Part shown: positions 1,589 to 46,745 of the stretch, in pieces | Layout of the letters: each line of letters begins with the position of its first letter | How positions within the stretch are numbered: the stretch's first letter is position 1 | DNA from: Oikopleura dioica | Lineage: Eukaryota; Animalia; Chordata | Length of the DNA: 64,000 bases | Direction: 5' to 3' | Assembly (NCBI GenBank): GCA_907165135.1 | Contig: OU015566.1 | Location: forward strand, 6,572,001-6,636,000 | Made by a program: the position numbers and the translations under genes | Notes under the pieces: generated by a model | Seen by the model: only the letters and a program-made list of their open reading frames with translations | What the model was told of the DNA's origin: nothing | Databases searched by the model: none

Positions 1589-3551
1589 TTACAACCAGTT
1601 GAATCGTTCGAATTGCGGATAGCAGTTCTCTTGATCTCGGCCTCTCTTGGTCGCCTCTTCTCGCGCATCAATGTGGTTCAGCCAGTCTTTCATGTAGTCG
1701 TCCAAATACGCGATGAACTTAATTCTGTCTTCGTTGTTTTCGGGGTTCCATGATTTGTGGAAAACATTGTGGTTCTCCTCTGGATCGAATTCGATATTGT
1801 ACAGTTCCTCTGATCCAGGAATGTATTTCATGTTTTCTTTTCGAATGGCGGCATTTTTCAGATCTGATTCGACTCCGGGAGTGTAAGCATGTGTCAGAAT
1901 CGGTTTCTTTTTCACTTCGTAGCTGGCTTCGCCTGTTTCTAGGTATGATAAGAGGCTTCTGCTGTCTGGTGCTTCGTTGCAGCCCAAGTCGTAGTCGATT
2001 AAGTCGGCAAGGGTGGCGTAGATGTCGACTGTGGAAACTTGAACCTTTGGCTCGTAGATGGTTCTTGGCGAGGGTTTTAAATAACATGATAGAAAAATCA
2101 TCTTTTATTGAGATAAATCTAGCTTTGAGAAAAATCAAGCTTTTTGGACCCTTTCCTGGGCTCGAATTTCTTCGGATAGCGCCATAAAAATGGAGTCCTA
2201 TGACTTGCCTCTCCCATTGTATTTTTGTAACCCTAATAATTTGATCGACAACAAGTCCCTTAATCGACATAAAAAGGCGAAAGTCGAATTCTTTTTTCTA
2301 TAAGTCGACCAATGCCTTGAGTTCAACAGTTCTTGCCGGTCCACCAGTAGATTCCGGCAAATCAAGTCGCCATTGACTATGCCCCCAGTTGCTAAGAATT
2401 TTCTTCCCAGTTACAGTTGGTCCATTGTCGCACATGAAAATCACGAGAGTATCGTTCACAATATCATGTTCTTCTAATTTATCAAGAATTTTTCCGACAA
2501 TCTCGTCCGTCTCCATCACCATTTCTCCAAAGAGCCCTGCTTCCGTCTGATTTCGGAATCGAGGAGGCGTGTTGAACGGTGCGTGCCCAGATTTCATTCC
2601 GTAATAGGCGAAAAACGGCTCTTCGTGATTTTCGTCGATGAAATTTTCGAGTTTTTGCTCGTCTTTTGCTCGATTTCGCGACTGTCGAAGGACTTCCCAG
2701 CGATTGTTTGGCGCATCCATGTTAGATAATAATTATTCAACTGAAATGGATCTGTGATTTCTTCTGCGTGACCAGTCGGGCCGAAATAGCCAGTGTAGGG
2801 GAAGTTATGGCCACTTGGCGAATAGTTTTCGACCGGAGTTGTTTCTGGATAAGGTTGGAGCTGAATCAAAGTATCTGCTGGTTCAGTGCTTCTTCCGTTT
2901 TCGAAGGATAAGCCGGGGCTGCAGCAAAGACCAGGCTGCGTGTACGCGTAATCATAGCCGTAAACTTCTGGTTTAGGGTTTTGTGCGTAATATCCGAATT
3001 TTTGGTGAACGGTGGCCGTATTCGGAAAGTTCAACAAACCGACTTCTTTCTTGTACTCCAACGCTTCTAGCCGGCGGGCGGTGGTTGCTTCGTTATCTTC
3101 TCGAGTAGCATTTTCGTGATTTATACCCATCGGGAACGGTTGCTGTTTTCCAAAGATTCCTGTCTTGTAGCCCGACTTTTTGAACATTTCACCAATATGC
3201 GGCTCGCCTATTTTCGAAGTTCAATAATTTTTTCGATCATAAAGAGTTTCAACAAAAAATATTCTGAACTTTCGCTTGGTTGATCATTCTAAACTGACTA
3301 TCATTCATCGAGTACCGCCCGGTCATGAGCATATATCGACTCGGCGAGCAGCGACTTGAAGCCGAATTCGCAGCTAGAAACTTCACCCCCTCATTACCGA
3401 TTCTGTCAATATTCGGCGTTGGCACTTTCGCTTCTCTGTTGTAAATTGAAAAATCTCCGATGCCGAAATCATCGACATTTAACAAGATGACGTTCGGTTT
3501 TCTCGCCTCGTTTTCAAGGGCAAAAAGGAAAAAACTTGAAAAAAGCTTCAT
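1589..3551 (-). CDS. Formylglycine-dependent (S1) sulfatase, arylsulfatase-like; apparent 1-nt frameshift near 2652-2656
   Basis: KPNVILLNVDDFGIGD, catalytic CSPSR plus LMTGRY, GYKTGIFGK, PFFAYYGMKSGHAP, TLVIFMCDNGP, GYKNTMGEASHRTPFLWRYP and DIYATLADL are all present. Confidence 0.9.
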
Positions 3552-37944: not shown

Positions 37945-39150
37945 TCAGTCATTGCTTTCCGTAAAAATTGAAGATGCGACTGAACACATAATTGACCCGT
38001 AACACATTTCATCTTCGCAGAAATATCCACGAGCAGCGGTGTTGATCTGTGGTGCGAAGGGGTTGGTCATCTCGTCAAGTTCTGATAGCGCTCCATCAAC
38101 GGTGAGTGCAGCAACGTCGAGTATAGTGATGAGGTTGTCGAGGATAGCGTCTAAAAATTAGAATTCAATTACGTTGAGCGCTTTCTTTGCACTGTGGACT
38201 TCAGGATTTCTCATTTTGTGGGGCTTTACCTGAGTCAGCGTAGCTATCAACGACTGGAACTTTGCCCGCAACTGTGTTGAAAATATCAGTGTTCTTCTTT
38301 ACAGTTGTAGACCAGTTGTCAATGATTATTTTGGGAACAAACTTGAGTTTCTTCTGAGTAGCAACAATGAAACCAAGATCTCCACTGCAAAATTCTTCGT
38401 GAATATTAACAATTCGACTATTATATTCATCTGTAGTATCTTTGGCAGCGTCTTCGTACATCTGAAGGTACTCATTCCATTCTTCCCAGACGAAAAGACC
38501 CTTCTGAACAATCATAGAGGAGCGTTGAATTCCTTCAGTAAGAATATCAGGATCTATGAAGTTGTAGACGTCGTTGAAGGTGATGGCAGCATCCATGATA
38601 TTTCCGGCAGCACCAGCAATGTTTTTGAAGTTAATGTTATCATCGTAAATATCCTTGAAAACTACCATTGACTCAGTAATTGCGAGGGAAGCGTTGGTCA
38701 ATAACTCAAGTTTAGCGGGGTCGAGGTCAGCAGTGAGCTCCTCGGCGATCTTGTCGAAGTCAATCCCGTAGAGCGCGCTGTCAGGATTATTGATCTCGTC
38801 GACAAAAATCTCGAGAAGGTCGTTTGGAGTCAAGCGTAGGTTCCAAATAAGTCTGTAAGCAATTTTCTTCAGCACTCTGACAACATCGGCGTTTTCGATG
38901 GTAGCCAATGAGGAAATAAATTCATCAAAGTCGGGTGTAGCTTTGGCGTCAGCGTGAAGTTGACCCTGAACCTTCTCAAAAAGACTAGTGACTTGGCCGG
39001 TCCCTAGCAAGATTACATCGGCCATTCGGTCAAAGGCCGGATCAAAAGGAGTCCATGCATTTGCCCTACCGTATATGATGACATCATGAATTCAAAAATG
39101 ATCTCTGGTACTTACGATACGCCAATCGTCAAAAATCTAGACAGCTTCAT
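37945..39150 (-). CDS. Secreted acidic helical protein of unknown family, tandem paralogue A
   Basis: Signal MKLSRFLTIGVS/ANA and three exons. Clearly homologous to 39508-40654 (e.g. ATQKKLKFVPKIIIDNW vs ATQEKLKFVPNVVIDNW; QINTAARGYFC). Confidence 0.8.
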
Positions 39151-39507: not shown

Positions 39508-40654
39508 TTAGCAGAAGTATCCGCGGGCAGCGGTGTTGATCTGAGAAGCGAAGGGAAGGGTCATTGCGTAGAGCTCGGTGAGAGTTCCATCGACGGAGAG
39601 CATGGCGACATCGAGTTGAGCGATGAGGGTGTCGAGAATAGTGTCTAAATCTTATTGAAAGTTTGGAAAACCTGTTCTGACTTCTATTTACGGACTAACT
39701 ACTGTACCCGCTAACTACAGTAATACTGTAATAATAAATACCTGAGACAGCGTAGTTTTCGACAACTGGAATATTTTCAACAAGAGTGTTAAAGATATCA
39801 ACGCTCTTCTTGACTGGAGTAGTCCAGTTATCAATGACGACGTTGGGAACGAACTTGAGTTTTTCCTGAGTAGCCTTGATAATGCCAACGTCTCCGTTGC
39901 AGAATCGTTCGTCGGTATCGACGACTCGTCGGTTGTATTCGTTCATGGTGAGATCGACCGCATCTTCGTACATGTAAAGGTATTCCTTCCATTCTTCCCA
40001 GACGAAGAGACCCTTCTCGGCAATGACTGAGGTGTAGAAAAGACCCTGAGTAAGAGTATCGCTATCGGTGAAGCTGTAGACGTCGTTGAGAGTGATAGCA
40101 GCATCCATGATATCAGCGAAGGAGCCGACGATGTTGTGGAGGTTGATGTCGCCATTGTAAAGATCCTGGAAAACACCGGCTGACTCAGTCATAGCAAGAA
40201 GAGCATTATTGAATGGCTCGATATGAGCAGGGTCAAGGTTGGCGGTGAATTCCATACCGACTTGGCTCAAGTCCATGCCATAGAATTCACTGTTAGGATC
40301 TTGGATTTCTGCGTCAAAAATCTGGACGAGATCGTCTGGGGTAAGCCCGCCATCCAAAAGAAGCTCGATATCGATGCTCTTGAGCACTCGGACGACATCG
40401 GCATTATCGATGGCTTTGAATTTTGTGATGAACTCATCAAAGACGGGGGTAGCATCACCAGCAGCTGAGAGCTCGCCCTGGATGCTCTCGAAGAGACCAG
40501 TAACTTGGCTCATGATGAGACTTGCCATCTGGTCGTAGACGGGGTCCAGGAGGGTCCAAGCATGTGTGCTAGATCAATGATAAAACCTGCATGCAAACTT
40601 TATCTCTAGAACTTACGAGACGGCGCCAAGCGACAAAAATTTAAGAAGCTTCAT
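39508..40654 (-). CDS. Secreted acidic helical protein of unknown family, tandem paralogue B
   Basis: Signal MKLLKFLSLGAVS/THA, with the same intron positions as paralogue A. Ends SQINTAARGYFC*. Confidence 0.8.
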
Positions 40655-41202: not shown

Positions 41203-44200
41203 TTAAATAAGTCGAAACTTTTGGAGGGAGTGTGCAAGAAGGCGGTAGACGAATTCGTACTGTTCGAAGTAGGGAACATAGTTGGAGTTGGATTTTCGGA
41301 TGGATGTAAGAAGCTCATTGACTTTCGGTGGAACTTCTAAATTTTGTGAGAAGAAAGATGGCAAATTCAAGAGCTTACGGGAATAATAGGCTCCGAATCG
41401 GACGAGTCTGGAAAGAACAAACGCTCCAGAAAACAGCTCTACATTATCAGACACAATCGTGACGGGGTATTTGCGGCGCTTGAGGTTGAAAATTTTGCTC
41501 AACTCATCATCGACATCACTAATTGGAAAAGTAAAGAAACTATGACAATAGGGAAGGTCTTACCAGAAGCTTTGGATTGAGGTAGGAAAAGGGCGGCCAG
41601 AATGATCGAAGATTGGAACTACTTGAAAATAATAGAGCTTTCGTTTTTTGGACTCGCGGGAGGTGAATTTGCGGAAGACGTTGAGTTGGCGAGAGATTAT
41701 CGAGGCATCTTCGATCGGTTGAATACGATTTCTGGGAACACAAGTTATCTACTGAAATCAAGGAAGAACTTACCTAATTTCATACTCTCCGTTGATGATA
41801 TCCTCATTCGCATAATCGACTGCACCAGATAAATGAATAATAATCGTCGATTTCTCCCTCCAAACAGTCTTCCAGAAATCATGAATGTCATCCTTTGTTT
41901 TCGGCGTTGTCAGACACAAAAATTGGTGGTCTAATCCATCAAAAGGTACAGACACTCGCGCCGTTTTCTGAGCAAACTGGTCGCTTTTGATTGATGCGAA
42001 CTCGTGGCGTAATTCCGCTTCTGAGGTTAACTTTTGTTCCACCCCGTCGAGTGAGGAAATCTGTGGAGAACTCTCTTTTGAGCTTTCTTTCGAGTTTTTC
42101 ACCATTTCCGCCACATCTGCCGGCCCTTGGTAAATGCCCTCGTTCGTCATCATTTGCTCCGTTAGAATAGTTTTTTTCTACAAAAAAAACTCGCTGACAA
42201 CTGTACAAAAACGCGAGTTACCTTCACTTCAAGAGTCTTTAGTCCACCATCGACAACATTCTTCACTGCCAGTTCATGCTGTCCTTCTTCATCGGGGACA
42301 ACGACCATCGTTTGCGACGAAGTCACAGACATTGTTTTTCCATGAATTAGTTCCGGCTTCGCTTTGCCTAGTTCAAAGTCTGGCTTTGCTGGTAGAATGT
42401 TCTCGGGGTTCCATTGTTTCGCTCGGGAGACGTATTCTTCGTAAGTTGGCACTTTGCGGATGCTCGGTTGGATGCGCGGTGGAACGCGAGACTGAGTCAT
42501 TTGGGAATAGCTCTGGAAGTCTGGAGGAGGAAGGTTGTTCACTACGTTTTGGTTTTGATCCCGCATGCCTAGAGAATGATTTGAATGGGATTCTTTTGAA
42601 AAAGACGTACTTAGGCCTTCATAAGAGGATCCAAGACCCATTGCCATTGGCGGTGCTTCTTCGACATCGTAGAGGCTATTTTTTGATTTAGAAATATATC
42701 TAGCGTTTTGAGCGGCAGCGGGATACATATTATAACGAGCTTGTTGTGTGACAGCGAGATGCAGCCGTGAGCGCGAGCCGAGGCCCTCTTGATTCAGGCT
42801 TCTTTGAGAGCTTTTCAAATGGATTAAAATTTATTTCGAAGCGAATTTATCGGTTAAAAGATGAAGCAATCAATTTGATTTGTGATAGCAATTTTTAGTC
42901 CTGCCTTGTGTATTCTTCGTATGAAGGTAGCGTTGGTGGTTGGGGTTTAGCAGGCTGTGTTGGAGTTGGAGTCTTAGGTACAAAAACTGGCCCGGCATCG
43001 ATTGAGGCGAAGTTAGGGGAGACGGAAAAGCCGCTGAATTTGTGCAGATGTTCTGGAGTCGAAGTCGAAAACTCAGAATAGCGCTGAAGATTCAGGAAAG
43101 AAAGATCATTGATGATGTTTCTTACCTGCAAGCCATGGTAGTTGAATCCAGTGTTGTGAGCATGTCGACTTGACTGTCCGTTGGTGTTCGTTGGGAGGTT
43201 TCTTTCGGACGTTGACATAAGGTTTTGAGTCACGAGATCAGGCGAAGAAATGGCCTTGAATTCATTGAAAATCTCGGAAATATTTATTGCCAATCTTACC
43301 ACAGAATCGTCGTATTGAGGTCTGTTATACATCTGTCCTTGTTTTCTGTAGCGATTATGCGTATCCACCATCGATTGTGGTCGCTGCTTGTTTCCAAGTC
43401 TTGTATAAAATGTTAGATATAATGGAAATACAGAGAGAACTCTTGATGTTAGAAAAAACTTGTTTTTCTGTTAGATGGAGTTTCGCTAGATTAGTCCTGC
43501 TTTCAGGAGTCCTTTTTTGGCAATGATAATAAGTGACCACCAACGATAAGTATTTTTTGTACAAATCTATCTGGAAGAGTATTAGATTGTATAAAAATTG
43601 GGATTCTTCACCGAGAGGGATGAGTTGACCTCCTTTTACCTTTTGCGCGTTTTCTCGAACCGGGTTTGGTAGTGATTTTGGTTCGATCTGATTATTTTTA
43701 TTTTCTTTTGTGCATAACATTGTGCAAGTGACTTTTACAGAAAGAACTAAACTAAGAGTGTGTACCTGAGACTTTGAGGTCGTTGAATATGAACTGCTCT
43801 TTGGCGGCAAGCGTCTTTGTAGTCTGGCGGAGAGACGTAAGTAGGAGGGCTTTGAACAGAATTGAGACTTGCCAAAGAGTTGCCAACAGAGTTTTGGACT
43901 TGTTCGTTGTCTACAGCTTGGTCTCTCAAATGAACTTGTTGATTTTTCCTCAATGTTGGTCGACGTTCTAGTTGATACTCGCTCTTCAGTTGTCGATCGC
44001 CTTGAATTGGTTTCGTCGCTTCGGGATTTTCGTTGTAGAAGCCGATTCTAGCGTGAAAGAGTTTCGCCGTGTATTTTGTGAAGTCAGAATCGTCCAGAAA
44101 GTACTGCAGCGGGGAGGGTTCGTTGACCAATCTTAGGGCAAGAGTTGAGCCGCGAAAATCGACTTTTTTGACGGTTTCCCATTTGAAGGTTCTTTCCACG

Positions 44201-45324: not shown

Positions 45325-46745
<1,421 letters not shown>

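Follow-up and report, generated by a model that had tools for sequence, protein, structure and literature searches.

PTPN14 (Pez) is a growth-control protein and a tumour suppressor, and the need for its enzymatic activity is still debated. Both PTPN14 and PTPN21, the vertebrate members of the Pez family of protein tyrosine phosphatases (PTPs), have been listed as pseudophosphatases in which the HCX5R motif is intact and the KNRY and WPD loops are altered (PMC9464862). PTPN14 restrains YAP by PPxY-WW binding, for which phosphatase activity is not needed (PMC4929422). The catalytic Cys is dispensable, whereas the WWC1-binding PY motifs are required (PMC11481495). Here we describe the Pez orthologue of the chordate Oikopleura dioica, an appendicularian tunicate, encoded on the minus strand of a 64,000-nucleotide stretch of contig OU015566.1 (assembly GCA_907165135.1, forward-strand positions 6,572,001 to 6,636,000). 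The whole of this stretch is referred to as the window and is numbered from its first letter. An earlier note on it had proposed that the gene encodes a dead phosphatase acting as a pure scaffold. The analysis leads us, with considerable confidence, to a similar reading: this is a selected gene with a catalytically dead PTP domain, and its product is likely to be a non-catalytic scaffold. Judged by alignment, no other Pez-family protein compared here has had its active site erased so completely.

The Oikopleura protein shares much with the best described members of its family. Human PTPN14 and its vertebrate orthologues (e.g., P0017 and P0018) have FERM, linker and PTP in the same order, a linker with PPxY motifs and a C-terminal SRLI/RLI. 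However, vertebrate PTPN14 keeps VHCSAGVGRTG and WPD, and only its KNRY loop is degenerate. In contrast, the Oikopleura protein has lost the Cys, the Arg, the glycines, the Trp and the whole region of the phosphotyrosine (pTyr) recognition loop, and the domain is about 40–50 residues shorter. Among solved FERM domains the closest is that of human PTPN21 (PTPD1; 8gvl), an enzyme of weak activity that has a WPE loop. It retains this weak activity and, unlike the Oikopleura protein, keeps HCx5R. Both its FERM F1 lobe and HPV18 E7 bind the PTP domain of PTPN21, which makes this domain an interaction surface (PMC10901363). There are also precedents elsewhere: the D2 domains of receptor PTPs, PTPRU and PTPN23/HD-PTP all use an inactive classical PTP fold for binding or regulation (PMC7320164; PMC9464862). 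However, these belong to other subfamilies and have other partners than Pez, and most of them keep more of the signature. The literature that we found includes no paper on Oikopleura PTPs of the Pez family. A Yorkie orthologue has been recovered from Oikopleura, although the analyses were not shown (PMC4761220).

The evidence that the domain is dead comes from its alignment with intact relatives. The C-terminal 300 residues of 28 Pez-family proteins with an intact HCx5R were combined into a local profile, to which the spliced C-terminus of the Oikopleura protein was aligned. The match extends over positions 83–300 of 300 and scores 40 bits (E 1e-14 for one target), which argues for homology as opposed to chance resemblance. 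The C-terminal domain is therefore homologous to a classical PTP by this measure, but truncated and degenerate. In this alignment the catalytic Cys corresponds to Ser942 and the Arg to Phe948. The active-site signature (I/V)HCxxGxxR(S/T)G is absent from the aligned segment, which reads IVSDNVELFSG instead. In profile numbering the substitutions are H233V, C234S, G237V, G239L, R240F and W191I. Profile positions 1–82, which comprise the KNRY pTyr-recognition loop and DYINA/DYINAS, have no counterpart in the gene.

What remains is a partial core. Forty-six columns are at least 90% conserved in the 28 domains. The Oikopleura protein keeps 18 of them, has gaps at 14 and carries substitutions at the other 14. 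The kept columns include DFW..W, QY.F and the RLI tail, whereas the substituted ones include all of the catalytic residues. The second Gln of the Q-loop is also kept in the window, as is the Asp of IFD, the motif at the WPD position. When the exon encoding the DFW motif was searched against the PDB, generic PTP matches were returned. With the nucleophilic Cys, the phosphate-binding Arg, the glycines of the phosphate-binding loop (P-loop), the Trp of WPD and the pTyr segment all lost, we infer that the domain would not hydrolyse phosphotyrosine and most likely would not bind it.

These results agree with most of what the earlier note had said about the domain. It had described a signature without catalytic Cys or Arg, a WPD loop that reads IFD and an unrecognizable pTyr-recognition loop, and all three descriptions hold. 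Its coordinates need some adjustment. The signature had been placed at 41425–41467, which is nearly right, but the full P-loop equivalent, PVTIVSDNVELFSGAFVL, extends further downstream (Table 1). Similarly, the note had assigned the domain to 41203–41900. A PTP-like domain is indeed present there, but it starts further upstream, at about 42051.

Is this domain simply decaying? Orthologous DNA argues otherwise. A word-index protein search with the open reading frame (ORF) of the last exon found three ORF fragments of about 80% identity from sister lineages. The contigs of these fragments (L001–L006) and a metagenome scan, the reach of which was the O. dioica complex (L011), supplied orthologous DNA. 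This DNA comes from at least three other lineages and is about 74% identical to the window. All related contigs come from marine plankton; this origin and the style of the introns suit O. dioica. L011 covers the entire gene. Its coding sequence is open and all shared splice sites are kept, including a GC donor. The introns are fully diverged and cannot be aligned, while the exons are conserved, with 90% protein identity overall between the window and L011.

Selection was estimated from the same comparison by the Nei-Gojobori method, as nonsynonymous (dN) and synonymous (dS) divergence and as the proportion of synonymous differences (pS). For the FERM domain, protein identity is 91% with dN 0.054 and pS 0.78 (saturated); for the linker, 90% with dN 0.055 and pS 0.69; and for the PTP-like domain, 86% with dN 0.083 and pS 0.58. 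In the PTP-like domain this corresponds to a dS of about 1.1 and a dN/dS of about 0.07. The earlier note had proposed such an estimate for the PTP fold, and the result indicates purifying selection. Comparison of the window with L001, L004 and L005 gives dN/dS values of 0.04–0.07. Among these three lineages, which are closer to each other (dS 0.16–0.26), dN/dS is 0.09–0.16 over the last 146 codons. The dead domain therefore evolves about 1.5 times faster than the FERM domain, yet it is clearly constrained. The dead motif itself is found in each of the four lineages with P-loop sequence, and those other than the window read PITIVSDNTELYSGAFVL. The WPD position is IFG in L001, L004, L005 and L011, so even the general-acid Asp is not conserved. 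By these comparisons the Pez gene is not decaying but is a real gene under purifying selection, dead domain included.

Some observations do not fit so easily with a dead domain that is preserved by selection. The dN/dS values are rough, because synonymous change between the window and the other lineages is close to saturation. The exon model is drawn from comparative genomics. Exon by exon, the Pfam model Y_phosphatase (PF00102) reaches 19.1 bits in the DFWxxVW region and 11.4 bits in the Q-loop region against a gathering cut-off of 20.9, and a PDB search with the last-exon ORF found no PTP match. About 45 N-terminal residues of the PTP fold are missing. Retention of the fold is a prediction from the conserved core motifs and from selection. 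Finally, in human PTPN21 certain FERM residues make contact with the PTP domain, and by eye these look unconserved in Oikopleura.

The low exon-wise Pfam scores could also be taken to mean that the locus is a decaying pseudogene, or that an incorrect exon model has created the dead motif, and the very long branch of this lineage in a tree of FERM domains (1.66 substitutions per site) points the same way. However, 1009 codons in the window and 1006 in L011 form an unbroken ORF, the shared splice sites have survived despite scrambled intron sequence, and dN/dS between the two is only about 0.03–0.07. Moreover, the P-loop segment sits in the middle of a conserved exon with homologous helices on both sides. 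Decay or artefact is therefore extremely improbable. Oikopleura proteins are generally highly derived. The same long branch bears on whether the gene belongs to Pez at all, because PTPN3/4 and PTPN13 are likewise FERM and PTP proteins and placement within a clade is weakened by such a branch. Yet a comparison of the FERM piece with solved FERM domains gives 86 bits (1.6e-23) for PTPN21 (8gvl), compared with 45 bits for protein 4.1 and 26 bits for PTPN3. Among the 453 relatives returned by an exhaustive phmmer search, the top full-length proteins have about 850–1400 residues, PPxY motifs, WPD, VHCSAGVGR(S/T)G and an ...RLI end; the named ones are PTPN14, PTPN21 or Pez. When 108 FERM domains were placed in a quick maximum-likelihood tree, a split (Shimodaira-Hasegawa approximate likelihood ratio test, SH-aLRT, 99) set 43 other FERM proteins apart from a clade of all 35 RLI-ending proteins, the window and L011. 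Pfam found nothing in two ORF pieces of the linker (42898–43470 and 42165–42830), and in particular no PDZ domain, and the RLI end and PPxY motifs are those of Pez proteins. The FERM match, the tree and the lack of a PDZ domain in these pieces thus support the Pez/PTPN14/21 orthology claimed by the earlier note, although the length of the window branch makes the exact position inside the Pez clade unreliable. Membership of another FERM-PTP subfamily is barely credible.

What if catalysis is rescued elsewhere? An alternative exon might supply HCx5R, or a second, active Pez paralogue might exist and make this copy a subfunctionalised duplicate. Fragments of FERM domains from marine metagenomes at 38–43% identity (P0005, P0006, P0015 and P0042) could in principle be such paralogues. 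However, they differ from one another as orthologues of different species would and have a post-FERM RRPTLRK motif in common, and a paralogue, even if present, would leave the domain of the window gene dead. An exon with HCSAGxGR, which the earlier note had named as a finding that would overturn its claim, did not turn up: neither HCx5R nor CSxGxGR occurs in the gene region of the window, whichever frame is read, or on the strand of the gene in L001 and L011. Rescue of either kind seems unlikely. It is somewhat less likely still that the domain has become a STYX-like reader of pTyr or another phospho-ligand, or that it uses unconventional chemistry. Ser at the Cys position is the classical substrate-trapping substitution, and the retained Q-loop Gln and IFD Asp would suit such a role. 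Set against this are the P-loop changes of Arg to Phe or Tyr, of one glycine to Val or Thr and of the other to Leu, the deletion of the pTyr-recognition loop and the Gly that takes the place of the IFD Asp in the three other lineages. The loss of the Arg and the glycines in particular makes phospho-reading unlikely, and no motif of another phosphatase class was seen by eye.

This returns us to the non-catalytic scaffold. Since the PTP domain has lost all catalytic residues and is nevertheless preserved by selection, the protein is probably a docking scaffold only. In the mechanism that we propose, the FERM domain would bring the protein to the cortex or to junctions, the PPxY/LPxY motifs would recruit WW-domain proteins such as Yorkie/YAP and Kibra/WWC, and the dead PTP fold would be kept as a protein-binding or FERM-docking surface. 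The interactions of the PTPN21 PTP domain offer a plausible reason for keeping a dead fold. That Pez serves as a pure scaffold in Hippo control through PPxY-WW binding, as the earlier note had suggested, is plausible by analogy with the mammalian proteins (PMC4929422; PMC11481495). A more tentative proposal is that the PTP fold of Pez carries out a conserved structural task involving neither catalysis nor pTyr binding, for example docking of the FERM domain or of a Hippo partner. We regard this as possible rather than probable. If it were true, Oikopleura would provide the cleanest natural separation-of-function allele, and partial P-loop losses would show that animals have repeatedly been able to do without catalysis by Pez.

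Such partial losses do occur. In the phmmer set, 37 full-length family matches end in RLI, and nine of these have no HCx5R near the end. The Arg is lost and the Cys kept in nematodes (P0023 of Parastrongyloides trichosuri, P0032 of Pristionchus mayeri and P0055 of Steinernema hermaphroditum), in a planthopper (P0031, the Pez of Lycorma delicatula, with its relatives P0047 and P0054) and in a fish (P0057, a PTPN14-like paralogue of Scleropages formosus). P0014 of the tardigrade Hypsibius exemplaris keeps Cx5R with Val in place of His, and in P0038 the P-loop segment is missing altogether. The relatives that have lost the Arg share the family architecture and the RLI end with the Oikopleura protein. 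However, all of them keep the Cys, most of them His-Cys, and none comes near the almost total erasure of the signature in Oikopleura. The literature that we found does not discuss the state of the P-loop in the nematode, planthopper or fish proteins. The losses of the Arg in nematodes, in Lycorma delicatula and its relatives and in Scleropages suggest, as far as sequences can tell, recurrent inactivation in the Pez family.

Another tunicate presents a different picture. The PTPN14-like RefSeq models of Ciona intestinalis (P0009, P0184 and P0185; 727–771 residues) have a FERM domain, a PDYE-type motif and PPPY. However, nothing follows their linker: the PTP domain is lacking, whereas Oikopleura keeps a dead one. 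The absence from Ciona might be either a real loss or the result of truncated gene models. The sister of Ciona in the FERM tree (SH-aLRT 100) is P0179, from a plankton metatranscriptome, which keeps WPD and QCx5R. Word-index searches with the PTP part of P0179 for a Ciona PTP exon or another tunicate Pez returned nothing usable, a result that is uninformative about absence.

What does the Oikopleura protein add? The gain is modest and incremental, because PTPN14 and PTPN21 are already treated as near-dead enzymes with catalysis-independent functions. The earlier note had called the gene a natural experiment in pseudoenzyme evolution. This is apt in so far as a dead domain is under selection, but the case is less singular than the phrase implies, since PTPN14/21 are already counted among the pseudophosphatases (PMC9464862) and Cx5R is broken in other Pez proteins. 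In the light of similar partial losses in other animals, Oikopleura Pez is a clear example and not a surprise. Nevertheless, all catalytic residues have been removed from a domain that is almost as constrained as FERM, which argues for a non-enzymatic role of the PTP fold. The protein could serve as a comparator in experiments on conserved surfaces, on FERM binding and on binding of Kibra, LATS and Yki. Recurrent erosion of the P-loop in Pez members suggests a family-wide tendency that is open to systematic study.

The gene model behind these conclusions was built from reading frames, splice sites and alignment to the orthologous contigs, including L011. It comprises 12 exons between 45046 and 41203 that encode 1009 residues in an ORF uninterrupted in both the window and L011 (Table 1). 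The FERM domain is clear in Pfam, with all three lobes recognized. The earlier note had also reported its retention, two PPxY motifs at 43819–43848 and a terminal RLI; the first and last are borne out, and the coordinates of the motifs are exact.

Table 1. Features of the Oikopleura Pez gene, in window coordinates.
Feature	Positions	Strand	Details
Coding exons 1–6	45046-44613, 44512-43766, 43687-43640, 43399-43300, 43254-43126, 43083-42905	minus	
Coding exons 7–12	42810-42611, 42568-42222, 42177-41774, 41731-41564, 41518-41379, 41336-41206	minus	
Stop codon	41205-41203	minus	
FERM domain, residues 1–304	45046-44035	minus	Pfam FERM_N 2.5e-11, FERM_M 6.3e-09, FERM_C 5.6e-05
Non-canonical GA-AG intron, 100 nt	44612-44513	minus	Inside FERM domain; absent from L011
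Adjacent PPxY motifs PPTY and PPDY, residues 367–376	PPTY 43848-43837, PPDY 43830-43819	minus	
Micro-exon, 48 nt, in-frame, residues 394–410	43687-43640	minus	47/48 bases identical to L011
LPSY, residues 538–541	42930-42919	minus	Possible further WW ligand, [LP]PxY type
GC-AG intron, 94 nt	42904-42811	minus	Kept in L011 (about 1980-2060 there)
PTP-like pseudophosphatase domain, residues 771–1009	about 42051-41206	minus	Four exons (9–12)
DFWKTVW	41880-41860	minus	Retained structural motif, counterpart of DFWxMVWE
IFD	41613-41605	minus	WPD-loop position
P-loop equivalent PVTIVSDNVELFSGAFVL	41466-41413	minus	His to Val, Cys to Ser, Arg to Phe
P-loop core IVSDNVELFSG	41457-41425	minus	
QYEFVY	41262-41245	minus	Retained Q-loop and alpha-6 motif
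C-terminal RLI (protein ends FRLI)	41214-41206	minus	Usual end of Pez-family proteins
AATAAA, likely polyadenylation signal	41013-41008	minus	About 190 nt past stop; block conserved in all lineages

The binding motifs of the linker are kept along with the FERM domain. PPTY and PPDY are identical in L011 and P0004, and the position of LPSY reads LPTY in L011. The pair and LPSY fit the [LP]PxY consensus of WW ligands and are conserved between lineages. The linker as a whole (residues 305–770; 43765–42223, minus strand) is 90% identical between lineages at the protein level while its synonymous sites are saturated. This makes it as conserved as FERM, which is unusual for a region that is presumably disordered. 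Such conservation suggests that the linker contains many binding motifs.

The introns are very short. Nine of the 11 are GT-AG, with lengths of 42–240 nt, and the remaining two are a GA-AG and a GC-AG intron. In L011 the exons that flank the GA-AG intron of the window are joined directly and encode identical protein. Its absence from this lineage means that the intron was gained or lost within the species complex. In the lowest-energy fold of this intron, AGAUAC near the 5' end pairs with GUAUCU near the 3' end, and the overall fold energy is no better than that of shuffled sequences. The GC donor of the 94-nt intron is the only donor that keeps the frame, and the same GCAGGA donor is found in L011. 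The ends of this intron are not closed in its lowest-energy fold.

One exon stands out. AG and GT flank the micro-exon in the window as in L011, and at the nucleotide level it is far more conserved than the other exons, which differ from L011 at most synonymous sites. Identity at 47 of 48 bases against a background of synonymous change points to constraint on the RNA or DNA sequence and not on the protein only. Perhaps this is a regulated cassette exon. The unusually long 240-nt intron also contains several blocks that are almost identical to L011 (about 43440–43575 in the window, minus strand), one of which is about 23 nt long and starts CTTATCGTTGG. The gaps between the blocks are not multiples of three, and the intron resembles a conserved non-coding element. 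A search of Rfam with the block yielded nothing credible (SNORD24 at E 1.1, opposite strand), and a consensus fold of the two sequences revealed no covariation.

The neighbours of the Pez gene lie on the same strand. Upstream, at about 45330–46490 (minus), there are ORF pieces that look aspartic-protease-like by eye and include a DTGSS motif. Just downstream are two tandem paralogues of 274 and 277 residues (38201–39025 and 39695–40528, minus). Contig L001 appears to hold only one copy of these (2215–3039), and the dN/dS of the shared copy is about 0.08. The single copy in L001 suggests that the tandem duplication may be specific to the lineage of the window.

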